NCBI GenBank assembly: GCA_965637545.1
Contig: OZ281499.1
Location: forward strand, 13,392,001-13,456,000
Length of the DNA stretch: 64,000 nt
Direction: 5' to 3'
Source of the DNA: Phallusia mammillata
Taxonomy: Eukaryota
Shown: positions 32,501 through 59,956 of the stretch, in pieces
Layout: each line of letters starts with the position of its first letter
Position numbering within the stretch: position 1 is the first letter of the stretch
The notes under the pieces: generated by a model
Seen by the model: only the letters and a program-made list of their open reading frames with translations
The model's database searches: none
What the model was told of the DNA's origin: nothing
Position numbers and translations under genes: made by a program

Positions 32501-32614
32501 TTAGGAATGTGTGCTTGTAGTAATTTCCCCATCCATATGTTTCGAAAATATGAATGAGATGCCTCTCGTTTATGGGGCGCCGTTTGTAAAAATATTTGTT
32601 GTCATTTCCATTCA

Positions 32615-32982
32615 GATTTACCTAAATCAAAACGGAAATGCCATTCCGCTTTAGTTAAATCAGAACGGGAATAACATTTTCATTCCGATTTAGCTAAATC
32701 AGAATGGGAATGTCATTCCGATTTAGCTAAATCAGAACGGGAATAACATTTTCATTCCGATTTAGCTAAATCAGAACGGGAATGCCATTCCGATTTAGCT
32801 AAATCAGAACGAGAGTCACATTTTCATTCCGATTTAGCTATATCAGAAAGGGAATGCCATTCCAATTTAGCTAAATCAGAACAGAAATAACATTTCCATT
32901 CCGATTTAACTAAATCAGAACGGAAATGCCATTACGATTTAGCTAAATCAGAACGGGAATGCCATTCCGATTTAGCACTGAA
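32615..32982 (+). repeat. Left subterminal array of palindrome GATTTAGCTAAATC (~11 copies, mostly alternating 33/39-bp spacing)
   Basis: Palindrome starts at 32615, 32648, 32687, 32720, 32759, 32792, 32831, 32864, 32903, 32936 and 32969 (partial). Confidence 0.9.
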
Positions 32983-33229
32983 CCATGACGAACTAAGTGA
33001 TGGACCGAACCATTATAATCAACAGGGTGTTGGGGCTTAAATTACATGCTACGTTTCTGATTTCGTTCAGAAATCAGCTGTTCATTGACAACTGTACCAT
33101 TTTATAAAAAATATAACCAAACAGGTTAGGACTGATAGTGACAAATACGGTTAAACATCAGCAATGCAGCGAACGAACGGCGTGAAAAATCTCGGTTCCA
33201 AAACCAGAAAAAAAATATTTTTATGTGAA

Positions 33230-36200
33230 CTCCCGGTGGGTGTAACATAGAAGGTACTCGTTATCACGTAGGATTTGTTTCAGTTCGTTTTTTTGGGCGA
33301 AACGATAATATGGATGCAAACCTGCAAGAGCACATAAAAAAAGCTGTAGGTGACTTTGCTGCAGCAATTATTGGTACTGTAACCAACAATTCGGATTCTC
33401 CAACATGCTCTTCCACAACTGATAAAATTGGACCAGTGACACCCAACCATGAACAACCATCAAAAGTAAACTAAATTTCAATTCTGCCATTTGATTTACA
33501 TTAGGTAACACCCATACAAAAATAAGTTATCTTTAGGCCAAACATTTTTACACTCCCAAATGGTTCTTGTTGGATTAATATCATTCAGTATTTGACACCT
33601 TAAAAATTAAAACAAATAAAAACTTTGTGCCCTGTAGGTATTTTTTGCATTTAAATGTATATAATCACTAGCATTATCATTTAAACATGTTGTACTTTAA
33701 ATTAGGTGACAAGGCCTGGTGGAAATGAAGCAACAAAGCTGTTGTTTATAGAATCTGACAGTGATGATGACGATTTTAGAAAGGTAGTTTTGTATATGAC
33801 AGTTAGTGTTTTTCATTCGGTTAATTCGGCTATTTGGGTTGGTTTTGTTGAAAAAAATAAAAATGTTTGGCAGGATTACAAACATTCACTACCCTCGTGC
33901 ACAAAACAAAGAGGATCTAGGTATGTGCCAACCGCAGTAAAAGGAGGTAGAAGACGAACAAAACCAAAAACAATGTATTACACCCGAACTATAATTTGCA
34001 TACCTGCAAATATAATGGAGCAAGTACAAAACAACTCGCACAACATTGCGTTTAAAATACCAAGAGGAAAAAACAGAAGTAAACTTGCTGCTATTGGGTT
34101 AGTTGCAAAGATTTCAATAAGTAACAGCTGGTCTGAACAGGAAGTAAGAAGAGAGATTTCAGATGTTTTCAAAAGTCAATTTACTCCATTTCAAACACCA
34201 TTATTGTCAAAAGATTTACTACAGTTTGATTATCTCAGCAATTTGCCTGGTTTGAAAGTACTTGTTAAGCCAAAAGTAAGTGAATCATTTAGATGGGATG
34301 CTGCTGCAGTGCTTTCACTCGGTAAAAGCATTATTTACGTCACTGTACAAAAAGAACACCAACTTTTGAAATCCTCCATGAATCTTTTGACAGAAAAAAC
34401 TGTTGAGGTAATATGAGTATGTAAATGTCAAATTAACAATCATAAAACAATAGGGAATGACAATTTTATAAATTTATTGCAGAAAGGTGACAAAACATGT
34501 TCAAACATTTCTTTGCATAAATATAATTCAGTTTTAGATGAAGATTTCAAGTGTGGGGTGAGCAAAACTTTCTAGTTAGATTTTCTAACATTTCAAATTA
34601 TTTTTTATTGCAAAAATATTTTGTGTTTACAGGAGTGCTCAAATACCAAACCTGGCACATGTCAGACACCTTCTTTGTACATGTAAGTGGACACTTAAAT
34701 TTATCTCTTAATTTTTTGTGGTTATTTGTAATTACTAAAATTGACTTGCACACAACAAAATAACTTCAGGTTTGTGTATTGGTTACCAAATTGCACTTAT
34801 GTTGTTAGGGATTATGTAAACTTGATATCTGAGGAAATTGATGAGGACACTCTGATTCAAGAGGCAATTGAGGCTTCATTGCTAGAAACCCCAAACAAAG
34901 ATAGGTACATGTTTCAGTGTTAGTTTTTTCGATGAGTTTGGAATTTGACACATGGTAGCAATATTTGGTACAAAGAAGGTTAATTAACTGTGTTTCTGAA
35001 GGTGCCAAGTTGAGGAATTATCTGCTCATGAGTCTATAAGGTGTATTAGAGACAGCATCGATGAAAGTCAAGTAAACTTCTTTAATGTCAATCGCCAAAA
35101 TGTTCTGGACTGTGCTGTCCGTGCCATAAAGCGAAAAAGTTTTTGTGCTAATGCAAGAATGAGTGTGAAATTTAGTGATGATATTGGCCAGTCTGAGGGT
35201 GCTGTAGATGCAGGTGGACCTACCAGAGAATTTTTAAGATTAGTAATGCAAGCTGTGGCAAACAGCATAATATTTGAAGGAAATGAAACAGCAAAAATTC
35301 TCACAAGAAATGAAACAGGTACATAATAGTACATTAGATATACCTTAGTTCTACAGTTTGTTGATTAGCAAACAACTTTGTAAAATGTGTACTTTTGTTA
35401 CGGTATATTGAAGCAAATTAAGAATGAAAAATACTACCAAATTAATAGTTGTGTTTATTTTATAGCAATTGCCAAGGACCTGTATTATGTGTATGGGTGT
35501 ATTATCTCCCTTTCAATCATTCATGGTGGGCCTGCTCCACGCTTTTTTTCCCAGTTATTGTATGATCAAGTTCTTGATAGATCAAGAAATTTTTTGGACG
35601 CTCTTGCAACTATAAATGACCCTGTCTTGTTTTCCAAGTTAACAAAAGTAAGCGCTAATTCAATTGTATAGTATTTGTATGTTAAACTGTCAACTTTGTA
35701 AGATAAATTCAACTTGTCAACAGATCAAAAATACTGATACAGTAGAGGAATTAAATGTGGCATTGTCAGATATGGATGATTTCTTGTCTATTTGTGGTTC
35801 CATTACATTTGTGAAGGACCTGTCATGCAAAAATGACATTGTTGAAAAAGCAATTAAATTTTATACAGAGGATCGCCTTACCGAGTTATTGGCCAGGTAT
35901 GGCTTAAAAGCAATGATTTATATTACTGAGACAGTAAGAGGTTTTTGTTTATTTCAAGGTTTAGACTTGGTCTAATGACACATAATTTGCTACATAAGGC
36001 AAAATTGGCACCAAATGGATTTGAGGATATTTTTCTGTGGCAAAACAATAAACCATTGAGTGGCATAGAAATTGTTGACTCAATTTTCATCAATTTAAAT
36101 CTATCAGAACCTGGAAGCAACGAAAGATGCCAGGAAAATCGGGCGGTTTCCTTCTGGAGGGATTACATACTGGATGTTGAAGGTATTCACATTCAGCACA

Positions 36201-36481
36201 TTAGCATACAACACATGACTTGTGTTTTGACTTTCATTTCAGATGGGGAATCCTTATGTTCAATAAAAGAAATTTTAATATTTGCAACTGGGGCAGATCA
36301 AGTGCCTCCTCTTGGTTTTTCTCCAACTCCATCCATTGAGTTCTCGAACGAGTCTATGTACCCTTTGGCAAACACTTGTGCGAACATATTGACTGTACCC
36401 ACAAGATACAGCAAGTATGAAAACTTCAAAGAAGCAATGGATTTTGCAATCCTGAATTCCCCCGGATTTGGTGTTGCTTAA
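33230..36481 (+). CDS. Multi-exon UIM + G2E3-type HECT ubiquitin-ligase-like gene inside the transposon; exon structure approximate, integrity uncertain
   Basis: UIM-like DEDTLIQEAIEASLLE. HECT motifs VKFSDDIGQSEGAVDAGGPTREF, SIIHGGPAPRFF, LIFATGADQVPPLGF and PLANTCAN (catalytic Cys), ending NSPGFGVA*. Confidence 0.75.
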
Positions 36482-36690
36482 CTGAAATATAACACAAATC
36501 TACCCTGATATTTTGGATCCTTTGAAATGGCTAGTTGGGTGTTCTTTTGTTTTTGATCTTTTTTAGCCAGTGCTTTTCTGGTCACTACCTGGATTTAAAC
36601 CCGAAATAAATGACATCTTGCTGGCACATTTTTGTATTGTTTTCAAAACATGCAAATCAAAAAACTGTTACATTAGTTCATGCATCAAAT

Positions 36691-37906
36691 TTACACTACC
36701 AAAGCATTGTGTTGTGTCCGGATTAAATATTCCAACGTTTTATTGACTGCATTTTTATACAAAATAATTCCATCTAGATTAGAGTTTTGCTGCAATAGGT
36801 CCTGTAGCTCACTCACACATTCATGTGGTAAATGGGGAATAGCGTCTACTTCAACAGAACTTGTACCTGGGCATACAATATCCTCACTATCTATTTTACC
36901 AGTATCGTTTAAAGTTTGCAGTTGAAGTAAATGTAAGTTAAGATGAAACAACTGTTCAGGAGTGCAATTTTTTTCAGTGGAAAGACTGTGCTTGTTCCAA
37001 GCATTAACAAACTCCTGGATTCGCTTATTAATGATGTGGCAAAACACAAAATGTAAACAAAACAAATCTGTATCATTTGTTGGGTCAAGCAAATTACTTT
37101 CTTCAAGAAAGAAAAAGTCATTGTAAAATTTATTTACAACTTGTGTGTTTATATCACGGTTGAACCTTTCAATGCGCTGGTTATGGACAGAGCTTCCAGT
37201 AATAACTGCATGATAGTTCTGATGCTTTTCTAGCATGTAATTCCACACTTGCACATTTTCTCCTCCATAGTCGGATCGAACATGTAATGGTAAACCATAT
37301 TTTGCTTCAGCTTCCTTAAACAATTTTAACACTACAGATGATCTGTTATTGGTTGAACAGTGGCAGAATGTAATGAGACGACTAAAGCCATCCATAGCTG
37401 CATGTATGACAAATTTCCATCTTATGAGCTTATGTGTTCCATCTATGTGCCAAATATAATTAGGACACGGAACAGTGTAGGTCCTTCTGCTTATTGTAGT
37501 CAGCTGTCTTGCATGGATCCCCTCGCCATCAACTCGGTGAAGACTCTGACGCAATCTTTTTCTTTGGATACGTATACCCTGTGATTGAAGATGACCCTTC
37601 ATCATTGCCTCTCCAGCTGCTGGGTGGTTTTGTTTTATGTTGCGGACTACATCATCCAACTCATTATTGGTCAACGAACTGCAAAATAAATACCCGACCT
37701 TGAGAAAATGTACTTTTTGAACCTGTGTATACACATTGATCAGATACAGTATACTCATTTAGAACCAAAACAAAGTTCATGATATACCTGTACTGATTAA
37801 TATCCACATCGTTTTCTCTCATAACCCTTTTTAGGGTTGGTCGGGAAATTTCCAAGATTTTTGTAATTGAGACTTTAAGTTGCAAAAGTTCCAACAACCT
37901 GTCCAT
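36691..37906 (-). CDS. Integrase-core DDE transposase (IS3EU-like) with an N-terminal HTH exon
   Basis: WHIDGTHKL, MDGFSR, VRSDYGGEN and HNQRIERFN; upstream exon ITKILEISRPTLKRVM (37795-37906). Confidence 0.85.
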
Positions 37907-38273
37907 CGGAACTTGCTTTTTTGGCCTTCCCTTGAAGTAGAATAAAGAAAATAAAAAAATGCTCTTGCATGGATGTTACCAAACTAACCATAATAAAATA
38001 CATGCAGGTCCGCCTCTACGACGTCCACGTTCCATATTTCTGGTTTTGGAACCGAGATTATCCACACCGTTCGTTCATTGCATTGCTAATGTTTAACTGT
38101 ATTTACCTCTCCTGACCTAATTGATTGCAATTAAATAATATGTTACAGTTGTCAACTAACAGCAGATTTCTGACCGGTTGCGAATTAGACAAACCCCGAA
38201 ACGTTGCATGTAATTTAAGTCCTTACACCCCGTTGGTTATTATGGTCCGGTCCATCACTCAGTTCGTCATGGT

Positions 38274-38578
38274 TCAGTGCTAAATCGGAATGGCATTCCC
38301 GTTCTGATTTAGCTAAATCGGAATGGCATTCCCGTTCTGATTTAGCTAAATCGGAACGGAAATTTTATTCCTCTTCTGATTTAGCTAAATCGGAATGGCA
38401 TTCCCGTTCTGAAATAGCTAAAACGGAACGGAAATGTTATTCCCGTTCTGATTTAACTAAATCGAAATGAAAATGACATTCCCGTTCTGATATAGCTAAA
38501 TCGGAATGGAACTGTTATTCCCGTTCTGATATAGCTAAATCGGAATGACATTCCCATTCTGATATAGCTAAATCAAAA
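38274..38578 (-). repeat. Right subterminal array, inverted relative to the left (~9 copies)
   Basis: Palindrome starts at 38306, 38339, 38378, 38411, 38450, 38489, 38528 and 38561, plus a half copy at 38279. Confidence 0.9.
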
Positions 38579-39357
38579 TGACGTGGTTCTTTACACATGC
38601 ATATTTTTACAAAGGGCTTCATTATTTGGGCAAAAAAGGCTTTTTAGAAATGTCATTGATATTTTTACAAACGGCGCCCCATACTCGTTAAACTCAAGGG
38701 GGACTGGAAAAAGGGTTATTTTAGTGTTGGGCGGGGGGGGGGGGGTTTCAGCAAGAAGAGAAATTTTGTCGTTTCCATTATTCCCAAAGGTAAGGCCTCT
38801 ATAAAGTCTTTCATAAAGTTTAGTATGTTTCTCTCTGCTTCTCTCGTCGTTTCTAAATGTGATTTTGAAAATCGATTTTTTCGGATTGAGGCATCGCACA
38901 CCCTCAAGCGATTCTTCATAGAAAGGAAGAATCCCGTTGCGGGTAAACAGTGCGATAAAGTCAGCTAGATTGTAGTATTCGTGTGATTTCACAGTAATAT
39001 GAAGAGATCTATCTTCCAAGAGGTGTCGTTCGATGTTTAGGGGCATTTTGGTAGTGGCTTTGAAGGTTGGTTGAGCAGTAGGGATGATTATAGTTTAAAG
39101 GTGGGGGGGCGCACGTTTACAGCAAATTGAAAAAATTACAGGAAAAAAGGGGGAAAGTGGGAGAGTTTTTTAAATATTAACAATACAGAATGGAGTTATG
39201 CAATTTCGATATTAATTGGATAAAAGAAAGTTTATTCGGATATCTTTTTGTTGTTTGATTTAAGTTTTGGGCAGATTTTAATTTTAGGGCGTGGCAGGGG
39301 TGTGGCCTGTTTTGGTTCATACATTTTCGCCTCTGTGCCCGCTGCATTATTCATTCA

Positions 39358-39469: not shown

Positions 39470-42400
39470 TTATTAAAGGTGTTTATATGTTTTATAAATG
39501 TATCATGTAATGTGGAAATTAAGTCACATCGAGTATTTACTATACTGGCTGAACTTCCAGAAGGTAAATATAAGTTAATTATTGCGAATTGTGTTTGACA
39601 AAATTCAAAAGATAACTTTTGTATTTTGTTTTCTGTAATAATTTCATGTTCCAAGTTTATGTCTTTTCCGAAATTTTCTTTAATCAAAATTAAAGTACCA
39701 TCAAGTTGATTTTTCAAGTAAGAGTTATCCCAGAGCGCATTAAAAAGGGGTATCAGATGGTTCTGTTTAATCCAATTTTCAAAAATTGTTTGATGTATTT
39801 TGTGTATTTCTTGTACTAAAAAAATTTCCGAATCTTGTTTAATTAAATGTGATACATAAGCTAATTTATTTGCAAGTCAGTTTGTATTAAATGAGAGTAT
39901 TCTACAACACGAATCAACTGCCATAGTTTAAGAGTTCTTGGAGGATCTTCTTGAGTGCTTCTTGTTCTTCTTCTTTGGTTTCTTCTGAGATGTACTTGAG
40001 CTATTCTTTCTTTTGTTTTTTCTCACTTCAAAGGGATTATCCGGTTCTGAATCTGTGCCTGAAGAGCCATTTTATTTGGTGCCCAGAAAAATTGAAATAA
40101 AATGTAATTTAGGTCTTTAATGTGTTTCTTTAGTGGTGGGAAAGCACGTGCTAAAAATACTATTTTTGGAATTATAAGTGTGTTTATTATAGTTATTTTA
40201 CCAGGTAGTGTTAAATTTCTGTTTGTAAAACGCGTTGTAATGTTTTGGCGTGACTTGTAAATAGTTTCCAATTTTTATGTATAGCCCAGTTTTGTATAGT
40301 ACATGTAATCCCGAGTATTTTTACTTCGCTTTTCAGAAAATTTGGATAAATTTGATTATTTCTGTTCTAAGATTTTGAGAAAATGCTATAATTTCGGTTT
40401 TTTCTTCATTTATTTTTTGTCCGCTGGCTATTGCGTACAAATTCATCTGTGTAAAGATTTCGTTTAGCGAGCAAGTGTTTGTAATGATAAAAGAAGTATC
40501 ATCTGCGTATTGTTGGAATTTCGTTTCGGTCGGTCCTATTTTAATTCCGTTTATTTTTGTGTTCTGTTTTGTGCATGTGATGAGTGTTTCAGTTATAGCA
40601 ACTTACAACAACATCGACAAGCCGCAACCTTGCCGAACACCTCTTAGTATATTTATTTTTTCAGTCAGTTTTCCGTTAACGTTTATTACACTAGTAAGCT
40701 TAATATTTTTACATAAAAATTCTAAAGATAACTTTTATATTTTGTTTTCTGTAATAATTTCACGTTCCAAGTTTATGTCTTTTCCGAAATTTTCTTTAAT
40801 CAAAAATAAAGTACCATCAAATTGATTTTTCAAGTAAGAGTTATCCCAGTGCGCATTAAAAAGGGGTATCAGATGGTTCTTTTTAATCCAATTTTCAAAA
40901 ATTGTTTGATGTATTTTGTGTATTTCTTGTACTAAAAAAATTTCCGAATCTTGTTTAATTAAATGTGATACATAATCTAATTTATTTGCAAGTCCGTTTG
41001 TATTAAATAAGAGTATACAACACGAATCAACTGCCATAGTTTAAGAGTTCTTGGAGGATCTTCTTGAGTGCTTCTTGTTCTTCTTCTTTGGTTTCTTCTG
41101 AGATGTACTTGAGCTAATCTTTCTTTTGTTTTTTCTCACTTCAAAGGGATTATCCGGTTCTGAATCTGTGCCCGAAGAGCTAGCATTTTCATCGTCTGAA
41201 GGGTTTTCTTTGTTTGAGGTTAAAGGTTTCGTTAGAATTGGAGCAGATTTTGTTGCATCTTTTCTTTTAGTCAGTGAAGGGTGAAGCGGAGTTTCATGGT
41301 CTGGGGTTCCATAGCGACAAGAGTCCGAAAGATTGGAATAATCAAGTTTTTTTCTTTGCATTGCCTTGGCCAATGTTGAAGATATTCGAAAGAGATTTGG
41401 AATTTGACTTGGAGAGTGAGCCAGAATTTGGATTGGAAAAGAGAAAGATGTTTGGAGTTGAAGAAGATGCAGCTTCTTCTGGAACCTTTCTTAAGACTTC
41501 TTTGTGTTCTGATGTATTTAGATTTATGTTTTCGTTCAAGATTTTCTTCTGAAGTTTTTCAAACTTTTTGACTTTGGGAAAGAGATTATCCGCTTTCTCT
41601 TTTTGATCAAGACTGCCAATTGGTGTAGACTGCCTTTGTTGTTTGCTCACTTTTGGGCCAAAGTTGATGTGCTGCCTGCTTCTGGTCTTATAGGCGAGGC
41701 GAATTTACAATCTTTGACGTTATGCTCACCATTGCAAATGAAGCAGAGATGTTTCGTCGGGCAATCAGTGGCCCAGTGACCCCGTTCGTGACAATGTTTG
41801 CACGTGGGGCCAAAGGACTCTCCTAGGTGAGTAATTTGCATGTTGTGACCAAAGAGTTTAATATTGCGTGGGACATTGTCTAGTTCTGCATTGTCCAAGA
41901 AGAGATGCATGTAACCATTGCACAACGAAGGAAAGTGTCGGTGTGTTAGGTATCTATGTTGTTTATACTTTCCCCATTCTAGACGAGATGTTACTTCTTC
42001 CCAATGCTCTTCTCCCAGTTCGAGAGGAACTGGGAAGAGAGTAATTTTGGTCAAAGGCTTCGGTGGATGTTCAGATTTAAGAGTAATTTTTTCTTTTAAG
42101 TTCTTTGTGGTAGAGACTTTTGCCGTTTTTAAATTCCTTGTGGAGCTCTCCGAGGCGTTTTACATCGCGCTCGGTGAAAGTGATTTTGAATAAAGGAAGT
42201 CTGCGGTTTATGCAACGAATTCCCTGCAGTGCGTCCTGGTATTTCTTAAAGGGCCCATATGACATGAAGAAACTGATAAAATTGTTTATGTAGCAGTTTT
42301 CCGATGACGTAACTTTAAAGTGAAGGGACCTGTTTTCTTCTATAAAACGGTTTAAAGCGAGATAATGTTCCATATTTTTTTTACAATATTACAATGCGGA

Positions 42401-42722
42401 AACAACGATGTTAATGTTTCAAGATGATTCGAAAAATGCGTTATAAGTCAGATTTTTTTGTGTTTGTTGGTTGCAAGGTGCGGCTTGTCGTTTGTGGCAG
42501 CGATCGACGTGGAGCACGTCACAAGTTTGGACTAAGACAAGGTATTGGTAATTCGCCCACACAGACTAATTAACCAATCAGTGACGTCACGAGGGAAAAA
42601 ACCCAGGGGCTCTCTGGCTCTTTAGCCGGAGAGGGAGCCTGGAGAAGGTCTTGCACACAAAAAGGAAAGGCGCTCTCGATTCTATTGAAGTCCGGTATAT
42701 GCTTACCTTATTCAAATAGAAT
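39470..42722 (-). mobile_element. L1/Tx1-clade retrotransposon, copy 2 (rearranged, 3' end missing) with an SL-exon 5' end
   Basis: Frameshifted ORF1 (42373-41041; CKHCHERGHWATDC). EN start at 41037, deletion into RT (GVRQGCGLS), ~460-bp duplication (39599-40060 vs 40716-41172). SL exon at 42707-42722. Confidence 0.8.
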
Positions 42723-42781
42723 CCAACCAACCGTCCGCAGCTTTAGGGAACCGATTTGAAATGATTAAAGTCGAAAAAATA

Positions 42782-44484
42782 TTTTTTTTTTCAAAATCAA
42801 ACATTTTATTTGCAACAAAAAGTCAGCTAGCTCAACCCACCAAACAAAATCGGTTTTCTGCAACGACTGTACACTTTGCACACAAAAACACATCTTAAAC
42901 CTACAACATATCATGTCCAGTGAATATTGGCAGTGGACTATTTTGTTATTCAAGGATGGTATGCAAAAAAATCTTAAAAGAGTACCAACAAAAACATTTT
43001 GAATCGAACAAAAGGAACTAGGCAGTGGATTGTGAAGTTAAACTACATCTTCAACGCCAAGTTGGATCTCAACGTCATTTCAAGTTCACTTTCGGAGGTG
43101 TCTGGATCATTATCTATCACCACTGGGTGGGGTGTGTCGGGATTCATTTCCGTAGAGTTGACATCATTCATGCCTAAAATGTTCCTTGCAAATTCGATAG
43201 TTGCGACTTGTAACCCGAGACAAACACCAAGATATGGTTTTTGATTTTCTCTTGCCCATTTTGCTGCGGCAATTTTTCCTTCAACACCTCGATTTCCAAA
43301 TCCACCAGGGACCAAGATACCATTAGCTATGCAGATTTTTTTCCAAGCCTCACGGTATGACACTGGATCATTCACCACAGTTTCTTTCTCCAAATGTGTT
43401 GCCTCAATTATAGCTAAATCTAATCTTCTGTTCACTGCCAATGCTGCGTGCCTTAGAGCTTTAATGACCGACGCATAAGAATCTTCAAGTCTTGTGTATT
43501 TTCCTACCAGGGCAATTGTGCATTTCTTTTGGATTCTATCATATTTATCTGCAAGGTTTTTCCACTTCGTAAGAAGAAATCTTGTTGGATAAGTTGGCAA
43601 GCTCAAACGTTTCTTTAAATACGTTGATAGATTTTGTGCTTCCAGAACTGATGGAACATGGTATATCGAACTGACGTCATAAACATTGATCACCTGTTCA
43701 GGAGCTACATGACAAAAATTGGAAACTTTGTCTTTAACGGACATTTCGATTGGTGAGACGCTTCTACAAACAATAAGATCAGGAAATAAAGCAAGACCTC
43801 GTAAAGCTCGGACACTGTGTTGTGTCGGTTTCGTTTTCTGTTCTCCAGTTGCACTCGGCTGTGAAACGAGGCTGACATGAATGTTGCAGAAGTTTTCTGA
43901 TTTCACTCTGAATTGGAATTGACGAAACGCTTCCACAAAAGGCATCCCCTCAATGTCTCTTATCGTTCCACCCAACTCGATTATACAAACTTCCGGGGGT
44001 TCTTGATCACCGCTTACTGGAATCTTGGCGACTCGCTCCACCCATTCCATAATTGCGTCAGTAACATGGGGAACAACTTGTACAGTTTTTCCAAGGTAGC
44101 CCCCCTTTCTTTCTTTGCTGATGACATGTTGATAATTTTTTCCGGTTTGGATGTTGTTATCTTTGTGAAGCGTAACATTCAGAAATCGTTCATAATTTCC
44201 GAGATCCAAATCCACATCTCCGCCATAATCACACATAAATACATCACCATGTTCATATGGTGAAAACGTTCCCGCGTCGATATTTAAATAGGGATATATT
44301 TTAATGGCTGTGACACGAAGGCACATAATTTCAAAATTGTTCCCAAACTGCTTGAAATAACACCTTTTCCTATGCCACTTATAACACCACCAAAAACTAA
44401 AATGTATTTCATATTTTCAGAATCAGATTGCTTGGCATTCATAATGTTCTGTACTAAATGACAAATACCTCATTCAAATAGAAT
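42782..44484 (-). pseudogene. CTPS: Processed CTP synthase retrocopy of an SL-trans-spliced mRNA
   Basis: [17 protein letters not shown] (ATG at 44412), [42 protein letters not shown]. Intronless. SL (15/16 match) at 44469-44484, AATAAA at 42805-42810, A10 tail, 17-bp TSD GATTAAAGTCGAAAAAA. 1-bp frameshift near 44320 and an apparent internal deletion after PVVID. Confidence 0.95.
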
Positions 44485-44531
44485 GATTAAAGTCGAAAAA
44501 AAGTAACACCGATGATTAAAGTCGAAAAAAG

Positions 44532-44580
44532 TAACACCGAAGTGTTGAAATCGTGAAATCTTATCTTATTCAAATAGAAT
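44532..44580 (-). ncRNA. SL RNA gene copy with mutated splice donor (GT>AT)
   Basis: SL exon at 44565-44580 followed by ATAAG instead of GTAAG. Confidence 0.8.
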
Positions 44581-45096
44581 ACTGTTATAAGGTAACAGGC
44601 GGCTACCTGAAGGCCGTACATGCTTTATTTCAAGACACGGGATATTTTTACGAGTGAAATGGCAAGAAAAAATCCCCAGTCAGTCGGTGTCGCGCATGAT
44701 ATGTCCACTAGAGCAAAGTAGTGGCCAAAACAATGTGATACTAACTTTGTGCAGTGCTACTGTAACATTGTGGCGTGTTTTCCAATTGCGCAGACCTGTT
44801 CATGGTGACTTTATTCGAAGCATTGCAGGCACATAGGTGTGGTAGCCACCCGGTAATTACCGGGTTGGCTGCGGCGCGACTTGCTGGGGCCAGCAGGTCT
44901 GGCATAATTAGCCGACCAGTCCGTGCTGCTGTGCGCTTCAGCTCAACTTCTGCACCTCGAGGAGCCTCATTGGCGCCCCCACGACTTTGTGTAAGGCCCA
45001 GCAACACTTCTAATGGGTAATAATAATAAAAAAACCAACCAACCAACCGTCCGCAGCGTTAGGGAACCGATTTGAAATAATTAAAGTCGAAAAAAG

Positions 45097-45145
45097 TAAC
45101 ACCGAAGTGTTGAAATCGTGAAATCTTACCTTATTCAAATAGAAT
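45097..45145 (-). ncRNA. Spliced-leader (SL) RNA gene
   Basis: 16-nt Ciona-type SL exon + GTAAG donor + terminal hairpin AACAC-TTCG-GTGTT. The ~49-nt 3' end is inferred. Confidence 0.88.
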
Positions 45146-45190
45146 ACTGTTATAAGGTAACAGGCGGCTACCTGAAGACCGTACATGCTT

Positions 45191-45208
45191 TATTTCAAGA
45201 CACGGGAT
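45191..45208 (-). promoter_or_regulatory. snRNA-type proximal sequence element (PSE) of the SL gene, present in every unit
   Basis: ATCCCGTGTCTTGAAATA at -63 to -46, resembling vertebrate U2/U6 PSEs (CCGTG-N-CTTGAAA). No TATA at -30, consistent with a Pol II snRNA promoter. Confidence 0.65.
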
Positions 45209-45673
45209 ATTTTTACGAGTGAAATGGCAAGAAAAAAATCCCCAGTCAGTCGGTGTCGCGCATGATATGTCCACTAGAGCAAAGTAGTGGCCAAAACAAT
45301 GTGATACTAACTTTGTGCAGTGCTACTGTAAAATTGTGGCGTGTTTTCCAATTGCGCAGACCTGTTCATTTTGAGTTTATTCGAAGCATTGCAGGCACAT
45401 AGGTGTGGTAGCCACCCGGTAATTACCGGATTGGCTCCGGCGCGACTTGCTGGGGCCAGCAGGTCTGGCATAATTACCGAACCTAATTAGCCGATCAGCC
45501 CTTGCAGTTGTGCGCTTCAGCTCAACTTCTGGATCACGGGGAGCCTCATTGGCGCCCCCACGGCTTTGTGTAAGGCCCAGCAACACTTCTAATGGGTAAT
45601 AAAAAAACAAACCTACCAACCAACCGTCCGCAGCTTTAGGGAACCGATTTAAAATGATTAAAGTAGAAAAAAG

Positions 45674-45721
45674 TAACACCGAGTGTTGAAATCGTGAAAT
45701 CTTACCTTATTCAAATAGAAT
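45674..45721 (-). ncRNA. SL RNA gene (1-nt deletion in the UUCG loop)
   Basis: SL exon at 45706-45721 with GTAAG; hairpin reads AACACTCGGTGTT. Confidence 0.85.
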
Positions 45722-46247
45722 ACTGTTATAAGGTAACAGGCGGCTACCTGAAGCCCGTACATGCTTCATTTCAAGACACGGGTTATTTTTACGAGTGAAA
45801 TGGCAAGAAAAAATCCCCAGTCAGTCGGTGTCGCGCATGATATGTCCACTAGAGCAAAGTAGTGGCCAAAACAATGTGATACTAACTTTGTGCAGTGCTA
45901 CTAGAACATTGTGGCGTGTTTTCCACTTGCGCAGACCTGTTCATGGTGACTTTATCCGGAGCATTGCAAGCACATAGGTGTGGTAGCCACCCGGTAATTA
46001 CCGGGTTGGCTCAGGCGCGACTTGCTGGGGCCTGCAGGTCTGGCATAATTACCGAACATAATTAGCCGACCAGTCCGTGCAGCTGTGCGCTTCAGCTCAA
46101 CTCACCACGGGGAGCCTCATTGGCGCCCCCACGACTTTGTGTGAGGCCCAGCAACACTTCTAATGGGTAATAAAAAAAAACCAACCAACCGTCCGCAGCG
46201 TTAGGGAACCGATTTGAAATAATTAAAGTCGAAAAAAGTAACACCTT

Positions 46248-46278
<31 letters not shown>

Positions 46279-46881
46279 ATTGTAGAGGCACCTCCCCGCC
46301 TCAACAAGTGACGACCGACCGACAAAAACGGTGATATTTACTATTGTCGTCTCCTCATTAAAAATAAATTAAAATGCAGGCAGGCGGCAACAGCACGTGT
46401 ACTTAAAAGTTCAACGAAAAAAAGGAAAACAGGCTTGGCAACGAGAAAAAAAACGCGAAGGACAAGCATCGCACGTCGCGAACGGGATATGATTGCTATT
46501 GTCAACTAAGGGATTTCATATAAATTAATTTCATTTTTAAACAGGCAGGTGTAATAGTAATTTCAACTGTTGCCGCATTGAAAAAAAAAACATCACGAAA
46601 ATGTCAGATAGGACAGACATCGCACGTCGCGAATAGGGTAACTAATTGGTAATAACAACTAAGAGGTTTCATTTAACTAAAAGACATTTTTGGCAGGCAG
46701 GTATAGTACGCATTTCAGTTGTTACCACAAGAACAAACATAACATTGCAAGAAAACATATCATTGCGAGTGGAAAACTCTACGTGGCTGTTTGAGGTGCG
46801 TGGATTTTTAAAGTTTTAAGCCGAATTTTTGTTCTATTTCTGTTTCACCAAATTTCTGTTCAAAGTAATTTAAGTCCTTTT

Positions 46882-49800
46882 TTAAAAGAACAAAAATTTT
46901 TGCTGCAAATTCTTTGCGAAAGCGGCTTTATTGGCTAGGTATGAGTTGAGAAACTCGAGTTTTTGTTTTATTATTTGCAGACGCCAAATTGCAGTAGTTT
47001 TTATTACTAGTAACGATGTTTCCGAATCGAAGTGATTGTACAATTTGAGATTTGCAGAAGGATCGAATGGAGTTTGGAATTCTTTGAGGAACAGATCATT
47101 TAGGTAAGTTATGATTAAGTTCGGAATTGGGCAATTTGTAAGTAGGTGTTCAACATTGTCGTTGCGATTTTTGCAAAAATTACAGTATAGTTTACGGGGA
47201 TCACCATTTCTTAACCGCAAGAGTCCTGTTTGTCTATAAAAATCTCCCCATTTAAAAGCCTTATGGATGCTTAGGTAAGTGTATTGTCGTTCAAAATTAT
47301 TGAAAAAATATCTTATCTCCTTTTTCAGGAGTAAAGCATTTTTCCAACTGAAATCGGTGATGTGTGATGGCGTGCTATCTATTTCTATCGTTTTAATGAG
47401 CTCATAATAAAAGTGTCTGAGTTTTGCCTTTTGCCAATTGAAGTCATTGTTCTGTTCGATAAGATTTAAGTACGTAGCGTAGATTTTTTGCCAGTCTCTA
47501 TTGGGTTTCCATGCATGGGGTTTTAGGTTATCAAAAAACGTTGGTTTTATCTGTTTTAGCTTTGTACCTAGATTATATCTTGCCCATGCTTGCCAAATTT
47601 CGGTTATGTGTTCTGTTTTCAAAAAATCACGTATTTTTTCAAGATAGATTGCGTCAAGTTTTGTTTCCAGGTGTGGGACTTTAAGGCCGCCTTTTTGTAA
47701 GGTCGAAATGAGTTTCCGTCGGTTTAGTTGTTCGATCTTTCGCGGATGCCAAAAAAATTGGAAAATGATATATTTTAGTTGTTTGATATGGGCTGGGAAA
47801 GGTTTAACTGCACGTGCGAAAAAAAGAATTTTGGGATAAATTAGGGTATTAATTATGGCAATTTTTCCGGTAAAAGATAGTTTACGCGAGGAAAAGGTAG
47901 ATGTTATGTGTTTCGATTGTCTAATTACTGGATTCCAATTTTCATTGTGATCAAAGTTGTTGTTTTTGCATTTTACACCTAGTATTTTTGCACAGGTTTT
48001 AATATAGTCCGGGTATATATGCGTTAGGTCTGTTTGGAGGTTGCGTGAAATAGTAATGATTTCAGTCTTTTCCTGATTGATTTTCTGTCCGCTTGCATTT
48101 TGATACCGTTTCATTAAGTTAAAAATTGTACAGAGGGATTCTTTATTCGAAATTAGGAAGGTAGAGTCGTCTGCGTATTGTTGGATTTTTGTTTGTATGG
48201 TGCCGATTTTTAAACCGCTTATGTTAGTGTTTTTGTTTATTGCACATATCAGTGATTCAGCAACTGCCACGTAGAGTAACATTGACAGACCGCATCCCTG
48301 TCGTACACCTCTGATTATTTTTATTGGTTCTGTTAATTTTCCATTCACATTTACAGTGCTATTTATGTCGTTGTATAGAATTTTGATCCATTTTATCGTG
48401 TATTCATTTATTTTTAAATTTTCCATAATTTTGAACATAAAATCGTGGTCTATCGTATCGAAGGCCTTTTCAATGTCAACCATTACAAGCGCAAGTGGGG
48501 ACTGTTTTTCTTTACTATATTCTATTGCGGTTTTGATGTTGTAGTGAATGTGTTGGATGTATCTCTTATCGAGACCACATTTTTGTTCAATTGACAATTT
48601 TTCATTTAATTCATTCTGGAGGCGACGTGCAACGGTTTTACTGATAATTTTGTAGTCTGCATTAAGCAGCGATATTGGTCTCCAGTTTTTTATCAAGGTC
48701 TTATCTTTCTTTTTGGGGATAAGCTTAACTAACGCGTTCCGTAGCGATGTGGGTAGTTTTTGTGCCATGAAAATGTTATAAACTAGCTCAATGAAGTGCT
48801 CTTTTAAAGTTTGCCAAAAATGTAGATAAAATTCTACAGGGAGGCCATCGTTTCCGGGGGAAGAGTTTTTATTCATTTGGTTTTTGGACAATTCTAGTTC
48901 CTGGAGTGTTATTGGGGCGTCAATTGGGTTAGAGGGGTATGATTTCATTTGGGATACAAAGAAATTTTGGTCAGTATCATTTGTGATGTTTGGTTTCTGC
49001 CATAAGTCTGAGTAGAAAAGATGAACGTCGCCTAAGATTTTGTCTGCGTCGGTTTCAAGTTGATTATTTATTTTGAGCGAACGAATACTACAGCTTTCTT
49101 GTTTATGAGCCTCTATACTAAAAAAGGCTTTGTCAGGTTTTTCGTCGTCGCATTGGTCTTTTATTCTGGCTCGGATCTTAGCACCATGAAGGGTCGATTC
49201 GGTATTTGTTTTAAGCTTTTTTTGCAACTCCAATAGTTTAATGTTTACGTCTAGGTTTTGGGGGTCCATTTGCGCCATAATATCCTCAAACTGTTTTTGG
49301 GTTCTCGCTAGATCGCGTCTTTCAAGTTTTTTTAGATTAACCGCAAAGGTAATGGATTTTTTTCTGATTTTTCTTTTTAGAGTTTCCCACCATTCAGGGA
49401 CGGACGGGTAGTGCTCTTTTTCAGCTTCGAAGTCAAGAATTAGTTTTTTTATAAGCGCATTGTATTCGGGATTTGCTAAAAGCGCAAGATTCAATTTCCA
49501 TTGCGGTTTACCCCATCGTTTTCTTTTATCAAGGTTTAGACAAATGGTTGGTGCGAAGTTGTGATCGGAGAGCAAGGAGTGTTTATGGTTAGCGGAAATT
49601 AGTTGATGAAGCCTATTTATATTACAGTAAATCCGGTCAATTCTAGTTGAGGAACGCGCCGTGATTCGCGTATATATTTTTTTATTTGGTGCGAAAAAAC
49701 GGAAACAGTCTACGAAACCGTATCGTGTAGTCGCTTCAACCCATTGTTTAGCGTCGCAAGCTTTGTTAAAATTGGGATTTAGAGTATCCAACTGAGTTTC

Positions 49801-50271
49801 TACAAAATTAAAGTCTCCACCTATGATTTGGCAGTAGTTTCGGTTATTTGCTAAGGTTTCTGTAATTGCGTTTAAGAGAGTGGTTCTATTTTTCAAATTT
49901 TTTGCGCCAGAGGGGAGGTATACATTGCAGATTATATAGTTTAGGTTATTAATTGCAAAGGAGATTGTTTGTATTTTCTGATAGACCAAGATTTTATGTG
50001 TGATGTCGAGGTTGTGCACGAAGGATTTTTTTATAAAAATCAGAGTGCCATCGTCCACATTTTTTGGGGCATCAGCGCTGTCATTTCGCCAGATTGAATT
50101 AAAATAGAAATCGAAATTGTTGTTTTGAGCCCATAGCGTGAAAAGGTTTTGGTCAATTTGATGTATTTCTTGGAGCAATACTATGTCCGAGTCATCTGTT
50201 TTTAAGAATGCAGATAAGTCGTTCAGTTTGTGTGCAAGTCCATTAATGTTTATTGAGATAATGTGTAACAT
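46882..50271 (-). CDS. ORF2: APE endonuclease + reverse transcriptase + C-terminal CCHC, 1129 aa
   Basis: LLQEIH, GGDFN, RIDRIY, LSDH; WRPISLLNADYK, DIEKAFD, GVRQGCGLS, QYADD; CNFC...EHLLTNC. Confidence 0.95.
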   Translation of the reverse strand: MLHIISININGLAHKLNDLSAFLKTDDSDIVLLQEIHQIDQNLFTLWAQNNNFDFYFNSIWRNDSADAPKNVDDGTLIFIKKSFVHNLDITHKILVYQKIQTISFAINNLNYIICNVYLPSGAKNLKNRTTLLNAITETLANNRNYCQIIGGDFNFVETQLDTLNPNFNKACDAKQWVEATTRYGFVDCFRFFAPNKKIYTRITARSSTRIDRIYCNINRLHQLISANHKHSLLSDHNFAPTICLNLDKRKRWGKPQWKLNLALLANPEYNALIKKLILDFEAEKEHYPSVPEWWETLKRKIRKKSITFAVNLKKLERRDLARTQKQFEDIMAQMDPQNLDVNIKLLELQKKLKTNTESTLHGAKIRARIKDQCDDEKPDKAFFSIEAHKQESCSIRSLKINNQLETDADKILGDVHLFYSDLWQKPNITNDTDQNFFVSQMKSYPSNPIDAPITLQELELSKNQMNKNSSPGNDGLPVEFYLHFWQTLKEHFIELVYNIFMAQKLPTSLRNALVKLIPKKKDKTLIKNWRPISLLNADYKIISKTVARRLQNELNEKLSIEQKCGLDKRYIQHIHYNIKTAIEYSKEKQSPLALVMVDIEKAFDTIDHDFMFKIMENLKINEYTIKWIKILYNDINSTVNVNGKLTEPIKIIRGVRQGCGLSMLLYVAVAESLICAINKNTNISGLKIGTIQTKIQQYADDSTFLISNKESLCTIFNLMKRYQNASGQKINQEKTEIITISRNLQTDLTHIYPDYIKTCAKILGVKCKNNNFDHNENWNPVIRQSKHITSTFSSRKLSFTGKIAIINTLIYPKILFFARAVKPFPAHIKQLKYIIFQFFWHPRKIEQLNRRKLISTLQKGGLKVPHLETKLDAIYLEKIRDFLKTEHITEIWQAWARYNLGTKLKQIKPTFFDNLKPHAWKPNRDWQKIYATYLNLIEQNNDFNWQKAKLRHFYYELIKTIEIDSTPSHITDFSWKNALLLKKEIRYFFNNFERQYTYLSIHKAFKWGDFYRQTGLLRLRNGDPRKLYCNFCKNRNDNVEHLLTNCPIPNLIITYLNDLFLKEFQTPFDPSANLKLYNHFDSETSLLVIKTTAIWRLQIIKQKLEFLNSYLANKAAFAKNLQQKFLFF

Positions 50272-50274
50272 TGT

Positions 50275-51828
50275 TTAGTTAGTGCTTCTTTCTTCTTCTT
50301 GTGACTTGTTCTTCTTCTTTGGTCTTTTCTTTCCGGAGCTTGAGTTTCTTCTTTTCTTTTCTTTTTGTTGTGGTACAAAGAGCTCGTCTAGCTCTTTCTC
50401 GTTACTTCCTACTGTTTTTTCATTGGTTAAAGAATCTTCGTCGAGGGAAGAAGACTCGTCAGCCGTGAAGCTTATTCTTTTGGAAACAAGTTTGACCTTG
50501 CTGGTTATGTGCATCTGGGTGTCAGGGTGTTTTTTGGTTGGATAAGAAGGTGTAGAGGGTTTTGCCGAGTTTTTAATTGGAGATGCCGGTGTGCCATAGG
50601 TCGAGTTTGAGGATTTTGTAGAGGAGAGAAAATCAATTTGTTTGGGGTCCAACTCTGATTTATCCTCTGTTGAGAGCGAGAGTTTTCCAAAGTCTTGAGA
50701 AAGATTTGGAGAAGAGAGTTTTTCCATAGATTCGTCAGGAGGAAATTTTGAAGTCTGGGAACGAACTGGTGTGGAGGGTTTATCTTTAGGTACCTCGGGG
50801 GGAGGGTTTGCCGTCTGGGCACGGTTTGGAGTAGAAGTTTTGTCATCTGGTTCATCAGTGACCATATTTGAAGTCTGTGGACGATTTGTCGTTGTGTCCT
50901 TGGGCTCCTCACTATTTCTGTGAGAAGGTTGGCTAGATGCAAGATTTACTTCTGGGCTATCTTCAATAGGGATTGATTGATTAAGCTTGTCTCGTTTTTC
51001 TTCTTGTATTTCGATTTGCCTTATAAGAGGAGAGAGGTCATCAGGAGTAGTCCGGGGGTCCGGTTTGTCTTTTGGGGTAGATTTCTTAGGGCCCTTTGTT
51101 AGTTTCGGAAAGTTCCTGTCATACTCTTCGTCCGAGGACGATTCACCGTGAGAGGAAGAGATTGATGATCCATAGGGACAATTCTTTGCAAAGTGCCCTT
51201 GCTCTCCACAGATACGGCATTTGAGTTTTCTTGGGCACTGGTTAGCCCAGTGTCCCCTTTGGTTACATGTATTACACGCAGGTCCAAAGGTTTCACCGGG
51301 CTTGGCTATTTGTATGTCATGGCCATACATTTTTACCGTTAGAGGTATGTTGTCTAACTCTACTTCTTCCAAGAAAAGGTGGACATAGCCGTTTAAGATG
51401 TGAGGATACTGTCTATAGGTGAGAAAAGTATGTTTGTTGTAGATTCCCCATTCAAGAATTGATGCTGCAGTGGTAAAGTGTTTTGTTTTAAATTCGGCCG
51501 GGACCGGAAAGAGAGTCAGACGTGTCAAAGGTTTTGGTGGAGTAAAGCTCTGGAGTATAATCGTGTCATCACCATAGGTCCAGCAAAAACTGTTCTTCAG
51601 TTTGCGGTGCAAGAGTGTCAAATCGTGTGTGTGGTTCTCAAAGAAAGATATTTTGTAGATAGATCTGGGTCGGTTGATTACACGGCAGGCTTCTAACATG
51701 TCTTTATATTTTTCTAAAGGAAATCCTTTTTCGAAGAGATTCATGAAGGCATCAAACTTGTAGTAATCCGCTGTTGTGATTTGAATATGGAGAGACCGAT
51801 ATTCAAGCATGTACTTGTCGAAAGGCAT
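50275..51828 (-). CDS. ORF1 gag-like protein with two CCHC zinc knuckles (517 aa from the likely ATG)
   Basis: CNTCNQRGHWANQC and CRICGEQGHFAKNC; low-complexity S/P/T tail and basic C-terminus. Homologous to ORF1 of copies 1 and 2. Confidence 0.88.
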   Translation of the reverse strand: MPFDKYMLEYRSLHIQITTADYYKFDAFMNLFEKGFPLEKYKDMLEACRVINRPRSIYKISFFENHTHDLTLLHRKLKNSFCWTYGDDTIILQSFTPPKPLTRLTLFPVPAEFKTKHFTTAASILEWGIYNKHTFLTYRQYPHILNGYVHLFLEEVELDNIPLTVKMYGHDIQIAKPGETFGPACNTCNQRGHWANQCPRKLKCRICGEQGHFAKNCPYGSSISSSHGESSSDEEYDRNFPKLTKGPKKSTPKDKPDPRTTPDDLSPLIRQIEIQEEKRDKLNQSIPIEDSPEVNLASSQPSHRNSEEPKDTTTNRPQTSNMVTDEPDDKTSTPNRAQTANPPPEVPKDKPSTPVRSQTSKFPPDESMEKLSSPNLSQDFGKLSLSTEDKSELDPKQIDFLSSTKSSNSTYGTPASPIKNSAKPSTPSYPTKKHPDTQMHITSKVKLVSKRISFTADESSSLDEDSLTNEKTVGSNEKELDELFVPQQKEKKRRNSSSGKKRPKKKNKSQEEERSTN

Positions 51829-53378
51829 AGTGAACGATGTATGTAAGCAGATGACTCGGAGAAATAGAAGATAAGCAGAAGTGGAACCTACAGGGATGCG
51901 GTCTGGTAAGTACGGACGAGAAGGAAATTGAAAGGTACTGTTGTAAATCTGAATTAAATTATTTTTTTGATTTCTATGTTTTGGCTGTTTAGGGGAAGTC
52001 CCTTGACTGTTGTCGCAAAACAGGGAGTTTCCCGAAAGAAAGGCCAGAGAACAGATGGACAAAGGGGAATACCCTTTTACTTGCCGAAGACAAAGGGGAA
52101 CTCCCTCCACGAAAACAAGATCTTGGGGGGGACGAAGAGTAGAGCAGCAAGACCAATTAAGCACGAAGACAAATGCGCTTAATTGGTCGGTAAGGGGGGA
52201 AGTCCCAGAGAGCACCTCAGGCACGGGCCTAGGAGGTGGTCAGTGGGGCTTTCCCTAACACACACAAAAAAAGAACAAAGGTACAACTAGCGAAACGCCG
52301 CCGTCGCAGCTCTTATAAGAAAAGCGTAAACAGGGACGTGGCGCTAGGGGGCAAACAAAAAAAGAAAACAAAATGGCGCTACAAAGGTTTAAGACGTGTT
52401 AGATTACCAAGAATTACAACCAAAGGTCACTAGAGGGCCTTACGGGCCAGAAGAGGGCGTTACCCGGTTTGAGGCCTTAAGGGCAAAAAGTTACAGCAGA
52501 AAAGCCTTAGAGGCTCTTAAGTCAGGTTACTAGTTAGTTTTTACCACCAGAGGACCTTTGAGATCCGGTTATAGTTAATTTCAAATTACAGTTACCAGTT
52601 TACAAGAGAACTAAGGTTTATTGGTTACACGGTTAGAAAAAAAGGTATAATAAAACAAACAAACAACAGCCCTGCAAGCGCCTTTGCGCACTTACTGTAC
52701 AAAAAACAAAGTAAATAACACTGCCTGCCTGAAACAACTAAGGGTGAAACGCACCGATAAACATGCAAGAGTAAAACCACACCAAGCAACGTGCAATGCT
52801 TTCCGATTCTATTGAAGTCGGGTATGATGCTTACCTTATTCAAATAGAATACTGTTATAAGGTAACAGGCGGCTACCTGAAGACCGTACATGCTTTATTT
52901 CAAGACACGGGATATTTTTACGAGTGAAATGGCAAGAAAAACATCCCCAGTCAGTTGATGTCGCGCATGATATGTCCACTAGAGCAAAGTAGTGGCCAAA
53001 ACAATGTGATACTAACTTTGTGCAGTGCTACTAGAACATTGTGGCGTGTTTTCCACTTGCGCAGACCTGTTCATGGTGACTTTATCCGGAGCATTGCAAG
53101 CACACAGGTGTGGTAGCCACCCGGTAATTACCGGGTTGGCTCAGCCGCGACTTGCTGGGGCCTGCAGGTCTGGCATAATTACCGAACATAATTAGCCGAC
53201 CAGTCCGTGCAGCTGTGCGCTTCAGCTCAACTTCTGCACCACGGGGAGCCTCATTGGCGCCCCCACGACTTTGTGTGAGGCCCAGCAACACTTCTAATGG
53301 GTAATAAAAAAAAAAACCAACCAACCAACCGTCCGCAGCGTTAGGGAACCGATTTGAAATAATTAAAGTCGAAAAAAG

Positions 53379-53427
53379 TAACACCGAAGTGTTGAAATCG
53401 TGAAATCTTACCTTATTCAAATAGAAT
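53379..53427 (-). ncRNA. SL RNA gene
   Basis: SL exon at 53412-53427 + GTAAG + UUCG hairpin. Confidence 0.88.
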
Positions 53428-53952
53428 ACTGTTATAAGGTAACAGGCGGCTACCTGAAGCCCGTACATGCTTCATTTCAAGACACGGGTTATTTTTACGA
53501 GTGAAATGGCAAGAAAAAATCCCCAGTCAGTCGGTGTCGCGCATGATATGTCCACTAGAGCAAAGTAGTGGCCAAAACAATGTGATACTAACTTTGTGCA
53601 GTGCTACTAGAACATTGTGGCGTGTTTTCCACTTGCGCAGACCTGTTCACGGTGACTTTATCCGGAGCATTGCAAGCACATAGGTGTGGTAGCCACCCGG
53701 TAATTACCGGATTGGCTCCGGCGCGACTTGCTGGGGCCTGCAGGTCTGGCATAATTACCGAACATAATTAGCCGACCAGTCCGTGCAGCTGTGCGCTTCA
53801 GCTCAACTTCTGCACCACGGGGAGCCTCATTGGCGCCCCCACGACTTTGTGTGAGGCCCAGCAACACTTCTAATGGGTAATAAAAAAAAACCAACCAACC
53901 AACCGTCCGCAGCGTTAGGGAACCGATTTGAAATAATTAAAGTCGAAAAAAG

Positions 53953-54001
53953 TAACACCGAAGTGTTGAAATCGTGAAATCTTACCTTATTCAAATAGAA
54001 T
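53953..54001 (-). ncRNA. SL RNA gene
   Basis: SL exon at 53986-54001 + GTAAG + UUCG hairpin. Confidence 0.88.
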
Positions 54002-54528
54002 ACTGTTATAAGGTAACAGGCGGCTACCTGAAGACCGTACATGCTTTATTTCAAGACACGGGATATTTTTACGAGTGAAATGGCAAGAAAAACATCCCAA
54101 GTCAGTTGATGTCGCGCATGATATGTCCACTAGAGCAAAGTAGTGGCCAAAACAATGTGATACTAACTTTGTGCAGTGCTACTGTAACATTGTGGCGTGT
54201 TTTCCAATTGCGCAGACCTGTTCATTTTGAGTTTATTCGAAGCATTGCAGGCACATAGGTGTGGTAGCCACCCGGTAATTACCGGATTGGCTCCGGCGCG
54301 ACTTGCTGGGGCCAGCAGGTCTGGCATAATTACCGAACCTAATTAGCCGATCAGCCCTTGCAGCTGTGCGCTTCAGCTCAACTTCTGGATCACGGGGAGC
54401 CTCATTGGCGCCCCCACGACTTTGTGTGAGGCCCAGCAACACTTCTAATGGGTAATAAAAAAAAAACCAACCAACCAACCGTCCGCAGCGTTAGGGAACC
54501 GATTTGAAATAATTGAAGTCGAAAAAAG

Positions 54529-59938: not shown

Positions 59939-59956
59939 AAAAAACGCTTCTAGTCC

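Follow-up and report, generated by a model that had tools for sequence, protein, structure and literature searches.

The SLACS, CZAR and CRE elements of kinetoplastids, members of the CRE clade with a restriction-like endonuclease, insert inside the spliced leader (SL) exon at nt 11/12. Like the LINE described here, SLACS, CZAR and CRE1-2 are site-specific in tandem SL RNA genes and lie downstream of the SL start, where the SL promoter can drive them; as a precedent, SLACS transcripts are reported to begin at +1 of the SL gene that the element interrupts (PMC3447711). NeSL-1, a metazoan LINE targeting the nematode SL1 genes (PMC4640811), resembles the present element in its SL-gene target, but it is of the RLE-type NeSL/Utopia lineage, unlike the APE-type element here, and no report of an SL head carried in NeSL-1 RNA was found in the literature. 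The Tx1 group of target-specific APE LINEs (Tx1L, Keno in U2 snRNA genes, and others) has in common with our LINE an ORF2 with APE and RT, a CCHC ORF1, a poly(A) and a multicopy small-RNA gene as target; SL RNA genes as a Tx1-group target were not found reported in the literature. With R2 and R1, which are co-transcribed with rRNA, the LINE would share a reliance on the promoter of the target gene, and target sequence at the RNA 5' end can guide precise 5' junctions (PMC4494074). R2, however, cuts off the upstream rRNA by a ribozyme, whereas here the transcript would start at the host +1 and keep a structured host head. SINEU and the U6-L1 chimeras also carry small nuclear RNA sequence at a retroposed 5' end (PMC4494074), although their heads arise by template switching with variable or recurrent junctions, in contrast to the one fixed junction seen here across diverged autonomous lineages.

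The host of the present LINE is a chordate relative and not a kinetoplastid, and its ORF2 is L1-like with an APE in place of the restriction-like endonuclease of SLACS, CZAR and CRE. Unlike those elements, which insert within the exon, it keeps the whole exon, the donor and intron bases, and its head has been carried to non-SL sites and to another SL gene class. It is a new combination of a lifestyle like that of SLACS, CZAR and NeSL, an APE-type lineage, a tunicate host and a mobile, structured and unspliced SL-gene head; in a search of the literature no description of a tunicate SL-gene LINE of the APE type came to light. By convergence, a tunicate APE-type LINE appears to have reached the lifestyle of trypanosome SLACS and CZAR and of nematode NeSL, and it most likely uses the SL promoter. 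The first ~29 bases of the host gene travel with the element, because promoter-less, duplication-flanked copies start at SL+1 and class-A bases are found in class-B arrays, and the 5' end of the RNA can thus be read in the DNA.

The junction described in the original prediction is real, with the correction that junction, head and element all lie on the minus strand of the window (the whole stretch of DNA that was analysed, 64,000 nt). Read on that strand from 42762 to 42677, array sequence ending in GGTTGGTTGG passes into the SL exon, then GTAAG, then CATATACCGGACTTCAATAGAATCG and the 5' UTR of the element termed copy 2. The tunicate 16-nt SL exon, ATTCTATTTGAATAAG, occupies 42722-42707 and the donor 42706-42702, and 25 further bases complete the head. 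BLAST with the class-B array unit gave 96.5% identity over the flank and ended it at unit +107, so that the junction, predicted to lie ~107 nt downstream of an SL start, is exact; the first 21 nt of the head matched unit +1 to +21. SL followed by GTAAG occurs eight times in the window against none expected by chance, and seven of these occurrences belong to, or are in register with, the class-B tandem array. The conserved promoter-proximal motif GGTARCCGCCTGTTACCT stands upstream of the same number of window SLs (7/8) and is absent only before the SL of copy 2, in agreement with the predicted lack of promoter-proximal bases at this site. The class-B array on C6 has 150 units, and copy 2 is located at its distal edge.

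The 16-mer leader is the published Ciona spliced leader (PMC7986045), and the Sm motif of Ciona intestinalis was absent from the SL RNA genes examined here. At least three classes of SL RNA gene were distinguished, with an identical exon and differing intron parts. Class-A genes read SL+GTAAGCATCATAC, followed by their own short hairpin and T-run, in a 553-bp unit; the variant class A2 reads GTAAGCATCAGCAC, and class-B genes read GTAAGATTTCAC. Nearly all of the ~2,900 genomic matches to SL+GTAAGCAT are in tandem arrays on C3 (classes A and A2, units of ~553-555 bp), while class B comprises 150 units of ~576 bp, all on the C6 minus strand and the first ones in the window. Among the classes there is conservation of the 45 bp preceding +1, and SL arrays make up ~0.7% of the genome. 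The class-A and A2 arrays were read around C3:11.1-11.3 Mb, and class B from C6:13436553 onward. The last class-B unit before the insertions leading to copy 2 (SL at 44580-44560, minus strand) has a mutated donor, ATAAG instead of GTAAG. At 44483-44540, also on the minus strand, there is a 28-bp tandem duplication of unit +43 to +70, starting exactly at the +43 site of copy 1; it has the form of an insert-free target-site duplication, perhaps left behind by an insertion that was aborted.

Features of the SL-gene LINE locus in the window, with the 3' junctions of elements inserted in SL genes (position in the SL gene unit)
Feature	Window positions	Strand	SL gene class	3' junction	Basis
Copy 2, decayed body: 5' UTR, ORF1 remnants (42361-41510), APE fragment (41016-40690), RT fragment (40698-40065)	40065-42676	-			tblastn with copy-1 ORFs
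Copy-2 head: SL exon, unspliced GTAAG, class-A-type intron bases and arm complementary to SL nt 1-12 (42701-42677)	42677-42722	-			sequence
Class-B array fragment, unit +51 to +107, joined straight to SL+1 of the head, without promoter motif	42723-42779	-	B		BLAST
Processed retrocopy of SL-trans-spliced CTP synthase mRNA: SL without GTAAG, poly(A), target-site duplication of 17-20 bp	42780-44484	-	B	+51	
Class-B array downstream of copy 1	44512-46245	-	B		
Copy 1, intact LINE	46246-52850	-	B	+43	ORFs, domains, junctions
Copy-1 poly(A), then class-B position +43 as 3' flank	46278-46246	-			
Copy-1 ORF2 (APE and RT, 1129 aa)	50271-46882	-			
Copy-1 ORF1 (CCHC knuckles)	52224-50275	-			
Copy-1 head, directly behind a class-B promoter	52850-52806	-			
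Class-B array upstream of copy 1, units of ~576 bp	52851-55119	-	B		
L054 element			B	+43	
L053 element			A2	+45	

The ORF2 of copy 1 carries an N-terminal Exo_endo_phos (APE) domain, PF03372, and RVT_1, PF00078, as identified with Pfam. Its best solved relative is the human L1 ORF2p, collinear over residues 3-869 (E = 2e-54); zf-RVT is carried by many of its database relatives, and an exact-protein look-up of ORF2 gave no match. The order of an N-terminal APE and then an L1-type RT is that of the L1 superfamily, and not that of the CRE/NeSL clade, in which a restriction-like endonuclease follows the RT and no APE is present. Since the APE and RT domains and the collinear match to L1 ORF2p agree in this, the SL-gene LINE is, as judged from its predicted protein, an APE-type element of the L1/Tx1 group and not one of the RLE-type CRE/NeSL elements. 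The 3' terminal motif TCACNTGTTGAGGCG..GCCTCTA before the poly(A) has 76 occurrences in the genome, spread over all large contigs (46283-46311 and 27118-27146 in the window). Because this motif is dispersed, the wider LINE superfamily is taken to be dispersed as well, with only a sub-lineage associated with SL genes.

Copy 2 proved to be a decayed LINE, deleted internally and truncated at its 3' end, when searched by tblastn with the copy-1 ORFs. At the protein level its ORF1, APE and RT remnants share ~33-61% identity with copy 1, the UTRs of the two cannot be aligned, and nucleotide likeness is limited to the first 46-47 nt, that is, to the head (95.7% identity). Copy 2 had been regarded as a second copy of the family of the intact element; this view had to be given up, as only the head is common to the two, although the name is kept here. 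One relative of the copy-2 5' UTR, of 296 bp, was found elsewhere in the genome. Downstream of copy 2 there is no array sequence; neither its 3' junction nor its target-site duplication has survived.

A survey of 5' junctions for SL+GTAAG, which had been suggested as a check, was carried out as a pattern search of the genome for the head and with the copy-1 UTR, the family of the copy-2 UTR being too small to survey. Eleven heads of the lineage were found genome-wide, copy 2 among them, plus one head of a sister lineage on C1, and all of them, the sister head included, start at the A of ATTCT. Eight of the eleven stand exactly behind SL promoters, three of them class A2 (C3) and five class B (C6, copy 1 included), and the other three, copy 2, C2:7309982 and C5:7929272, have other DNA upstream. 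The copies on C2 and C5 are outside any array; the remaining nine are within SL arrays. In the C5 copy a clean 10-bp target-site duplication, GGGTGAGTTT, adjoins both SL+1 and the poly(A), and at the corresponding two places of the older C2 copy the repeat, GTT..CAAGTC, is imperfect. The sister-lineage head on C1 also starts at SL+1, next to unrelated DNA. Since all heads start at ATTCT and the C5 and C2 duplications abut SL+1, the head is part of what is transposed, and the RNA has its 5' end at the first base of the head.

The head is class A over +1 to +29 (GTAAG, then CATCATAC) and is followed by element-specific sequence; this single junction at SL gene +29 is common to all lineages and occurs in full-length elements. 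Thus 13 bases past the exon (GTAAG and 8 more) match the class-A SL gene, and copy 1 and four other copies behind class-B promoters retain the class-A bases. One subfamily was found behind both class-A2 promoters (C3) and class-B promoters (C6). As class-A bases are present inside class-B arrays, the head must have travelled with the element RNA and was not acquired from the local target. The eleven heads, the C5 and C2 duplications and the class-A bases together uphold the earlier proposal that the element RNA includes the SL exon and donor and was copied to its 5' end; the refutation test put forward with that proposal came out in its favour. Both ORF1 and ORF2 were seen intact in promoter-adjacent copies only (copy 1, L054 and L053, the three of these that could be read), and ORFs are broken or deleted in the C2, C5, C6:13336303 and copy-2 elements. 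The three C3 copies resemble a higher-order duplication, and the in-array copies are therefore not all independent.

Two further matches, C3:15116872 and C3:16164786, lie outside arrays. In addition, a contig of the independent run X1 joins a head of the copy-1 type (window 52849), from SL+2, to a 1.5-kb tandem repeat of C7 and C5 (L067, C7:5139835). This junction, seen in that one contig of a run of uncertain kind, may represent a polymorphic promoter-less insertion; Rfam gave no match on the 1.5-kb C7/C5 satellite.

Retention of GTAAG had been taken to indicate read-through transcription and not trans-splicing. The 13 post-exon bases that match class A, and the absence of GTAAG from the CTP-synthase retrocopy, are in line with this, and an origin of the head from an unspliced class-A SL gene transcript, not from trans-splicing, is supported at the level of sequence. 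The retrocopy, with an open frame of 427 aa, is inserted in an SL gene unit and separates the array from copy 2. Its SL, with one mismatch, is joined directly to the 5' UTR at the AG acceptor of the parent gene; the parent-like gene at C6:25.565 Mb has the AG acceptor before the UTR and an intron missing from the retrocopy. The target-site duplication, TTTTTTCGACTTTAATC(AT), starts at class-B unit position +51, and it overlaps the first SL bases, so that the retrocopy, an independent marker of the 5' end of the SL RNA, starts at the first SL base of the LINE heads or within ~3 nt of it. Judging by its structure, the retrocopy is an internal control for the look of a trans-spliced head, and the LINE head differs from it.

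Transcription of the parent element from an SL gene promoter would be the most economical reading of these sequences, because the 5' end of the element is SL+1, 8/11 copies stand exactly behind SL promoters and all three copies seen with intact ORFs are there. This part of the original prediction is borne out as far as the 5' end and the position of the copies are concerned, while the use of the promoter itself is deduced from them. As in a co-transcribed LINE, the 5' end of the element coincides with the transcription start of the host gene, all heads beginning at the first SL base. The element was also present in runs X1-X5 (of unknown kind, at contig level), and the contigs span promoter and spacer too.

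The conserved head with its single junction at +29 would also fit one founding event, in which a template switch of the reverse transcriptase onto SL RNA provided the head once, to be inherited since then, while an internal promoter, placed in the head or 5' UTR, drives the elements. Machinery of the L1/Tx1 type is documented to switch templates onto small nuclear RNAs (PMC4494074), and the existence of promoter-less copies agrees with an internal promoter. However, the junction is internal to the SL RNA (+29 of ~46-48 nt) and not at its 3' end, and the variable junctions near the small-RNA 3' end and the truncated LINEs of U6-L1-type chimeras were not found. The exact register of eight copies behind SL promoters, with the intact ones all among them, likewise speaks against such an event; since SL genes also harbour relatives in another species, residence in the gene is a simpler source of the head, and a motif search showed no SL-type promoter motif inside the element. 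We consider an origin by template switching unlikely on these grounds. A promoter inside the element may nevertheless fire at the first base of the head.

This edge of the array has been heavily rearranged, with several insertions besides the 28-bp duplication, and copy 2 could once have stood behind a normal promoter, with a later deletion of +108 to -1 ending by chance at SL+1. A 469-bp deletion that stops just at the start of transcription and leaves no microhomology at GGTTGGTTGG|ATTC is improbable, and the independent copies on C5, C2 and C1 start at the same base with unrelated DNA upstream; little credence can be given to a chance deletion. Addition of the SL to the element RNA by trans-splicing, although the CTP-synthase retrocopy demonstrates that trans-spliced RNAs do get retroposed into this array, is practically ruled out by the retained GTAAG and 8 class-A intron bases, which trans-splicing removes.

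The 3' junctions of the three LINEs and the retrocopy (Table) are all in or beside the terminal hairpin or T-run of the SL RNA. With nine of the eleven heads in arrays, and LINE 3' junctions at +43 (twice) and +45, the lifestyle of the element is SL-gene-specific. In promoter-adjacent copies ~21-23 nt of the gene (+22 to +42/44) are replaced, and the SL of the head coincides with that of the gene.

The explanation that we regard as probable is a LINE of SL genes whose RNA starts at SL+1, bears a class-A-derived head and is inserted in SL genes. The element RNA would begin at the first transcribed base of the SL gene, and its 45-47-nt head would consist of the 16-nt SL exon, the unspliced GTAAG with ~8 class-A intron bases and an element-encoded pairing arm. 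An ancestral copy in a class-A SL gene was presumably transcribed from the external promoter of that gene, the head being retained since. Target-primed reverse transcription would start where the terminal hairpin or T-run of an SL gene is nicked, a site evident from the three LINE 3' junctions (+43 to +45), and would run to the 5' end of the RNA. The SL stretch of the cDNA would then, in the majority of fixed copies, be aligned with the target's SL exon and joined to it in register, probably by homology-mediated 5' joining, which would delete ~21-23 nt and put the element directly behind a live SL promoter again. In the case of copy 2 the 5' end would have been joined without SL homology, at +107, and the naked head would mark the true 5' end of the RNA, with no promoter left at the normal distance from this copy. 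The SL-bearing cDNA of CTP synthase was joined without SL homology, which makes the homology route optional; judging by this retrocopy, host mRNAs too appear to be carried into the SL array by the same machinery. Such a scheme raises the question of promoter-less LINEs that regain a promoter at each jump via homology-guided 5' joining, and it bears on the turnover of SL arrays and on the annotation of SL genes in ascidian genomes.

It also raises the question of how an RNA with a bona fide SL exon and donor escapes use in trans-splicing, and here the conserved hairpin of the head has to be considered. All heads can adopt a fold in which the arm is paired to SL nt 1-8 and 10-12, and UACC to GGUA at the donor. 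Among six distinct head sequences 100% of the pairs are kept, the arm changes being solely A-to-G and leading to U-G wobbles. In a covariation test there were no double-sided changes and the SL side was invariant, which fits an RNA structure of the sense strand and is statistically not decisive. In the sister lineage on C1 another arm, of greater length, pairs with the donor (-15 kcal/mol, z = -5.3). In the native SL RNAs the donor is unpaired (A, A2) or weakly paired, and the fold-back of the SL 5' end seen in the heads is present in none of them. Outside the SL, the head has 84-92% identity between lineages (92% for copy 1 vs copy 2), as against ~50% between copy 1 and copy 2 in the next 150 nt, and ~50-55% there for the most diverged lineages (copy 2 and C6:13336303). 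Selection on the head is likely from these comparisons. A more tentative and rather doubtful idea is that the head is an evolved device and no passive transduction, in which the SL guides recapture of a promoter and the arm shields the donor from trans-splicing, with the SL cap perhaps used for translation. If true, it would be a self-renewing mechanism of promoter capture in a LINE of the chordate lineage.

The best database relative of ORF2, P0001 (33% identity), is in an SL array of another tunicate-type assembly. At its locus (L075, a contig of ENA ERZ25067582, positions 4504-12509) a 596-bp SL array with the same 16-nt leader contains two tandem L1-like elements. The insertion is at +20/+23, with the 5' junction after the donor GTAA, and the poly(A) is followed by position +23. 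The second-best relative, P0002, is on a TARA metagenome scaffold (L076) and is 29% identical. Positions 1-70 of L076 resemble what we take to be the 5' part of U2 snRNA, a hint of a Keno-like element of U2 genes and, indirectly, of a possible place of the SL-gene LINE in the Tx1 clade. Rfam gave no match on L076 and L077. Both P0001 and P0002 fit a branch of the L1/Tx1 group that targets small-RNA genes, the U2 likeness of P0002 being a lead only.

A second LINE family, with an ORF2 ~24% identical, was also observed in SL genes. In the window two of its elements are arranged head-to-tail at 55120-62178 and 62179-62470 (minus strand), and another is at L031:1145-4728. The 3' end of this family (..AAAAGATGCC) adjoins class-B position +37, and in a class-A array the family replaces +26 to +34. 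One copy, C6:13335662, bears its own SL+GTAAGCATCAG head. A third, related LINE at 27079-39052 (minus strand) has ~50% amino acid identity to copy 1 and lies outside SL genes. It appears to be split by an insertion of ~6 kb, as residues 129-245 of ORF1 are encoded at 39052-38690 and residues 248-418 at 32564-32055. Arrays of a 39-bp repeat are present at its two inner edges (38279-38574 and 32600-33020).
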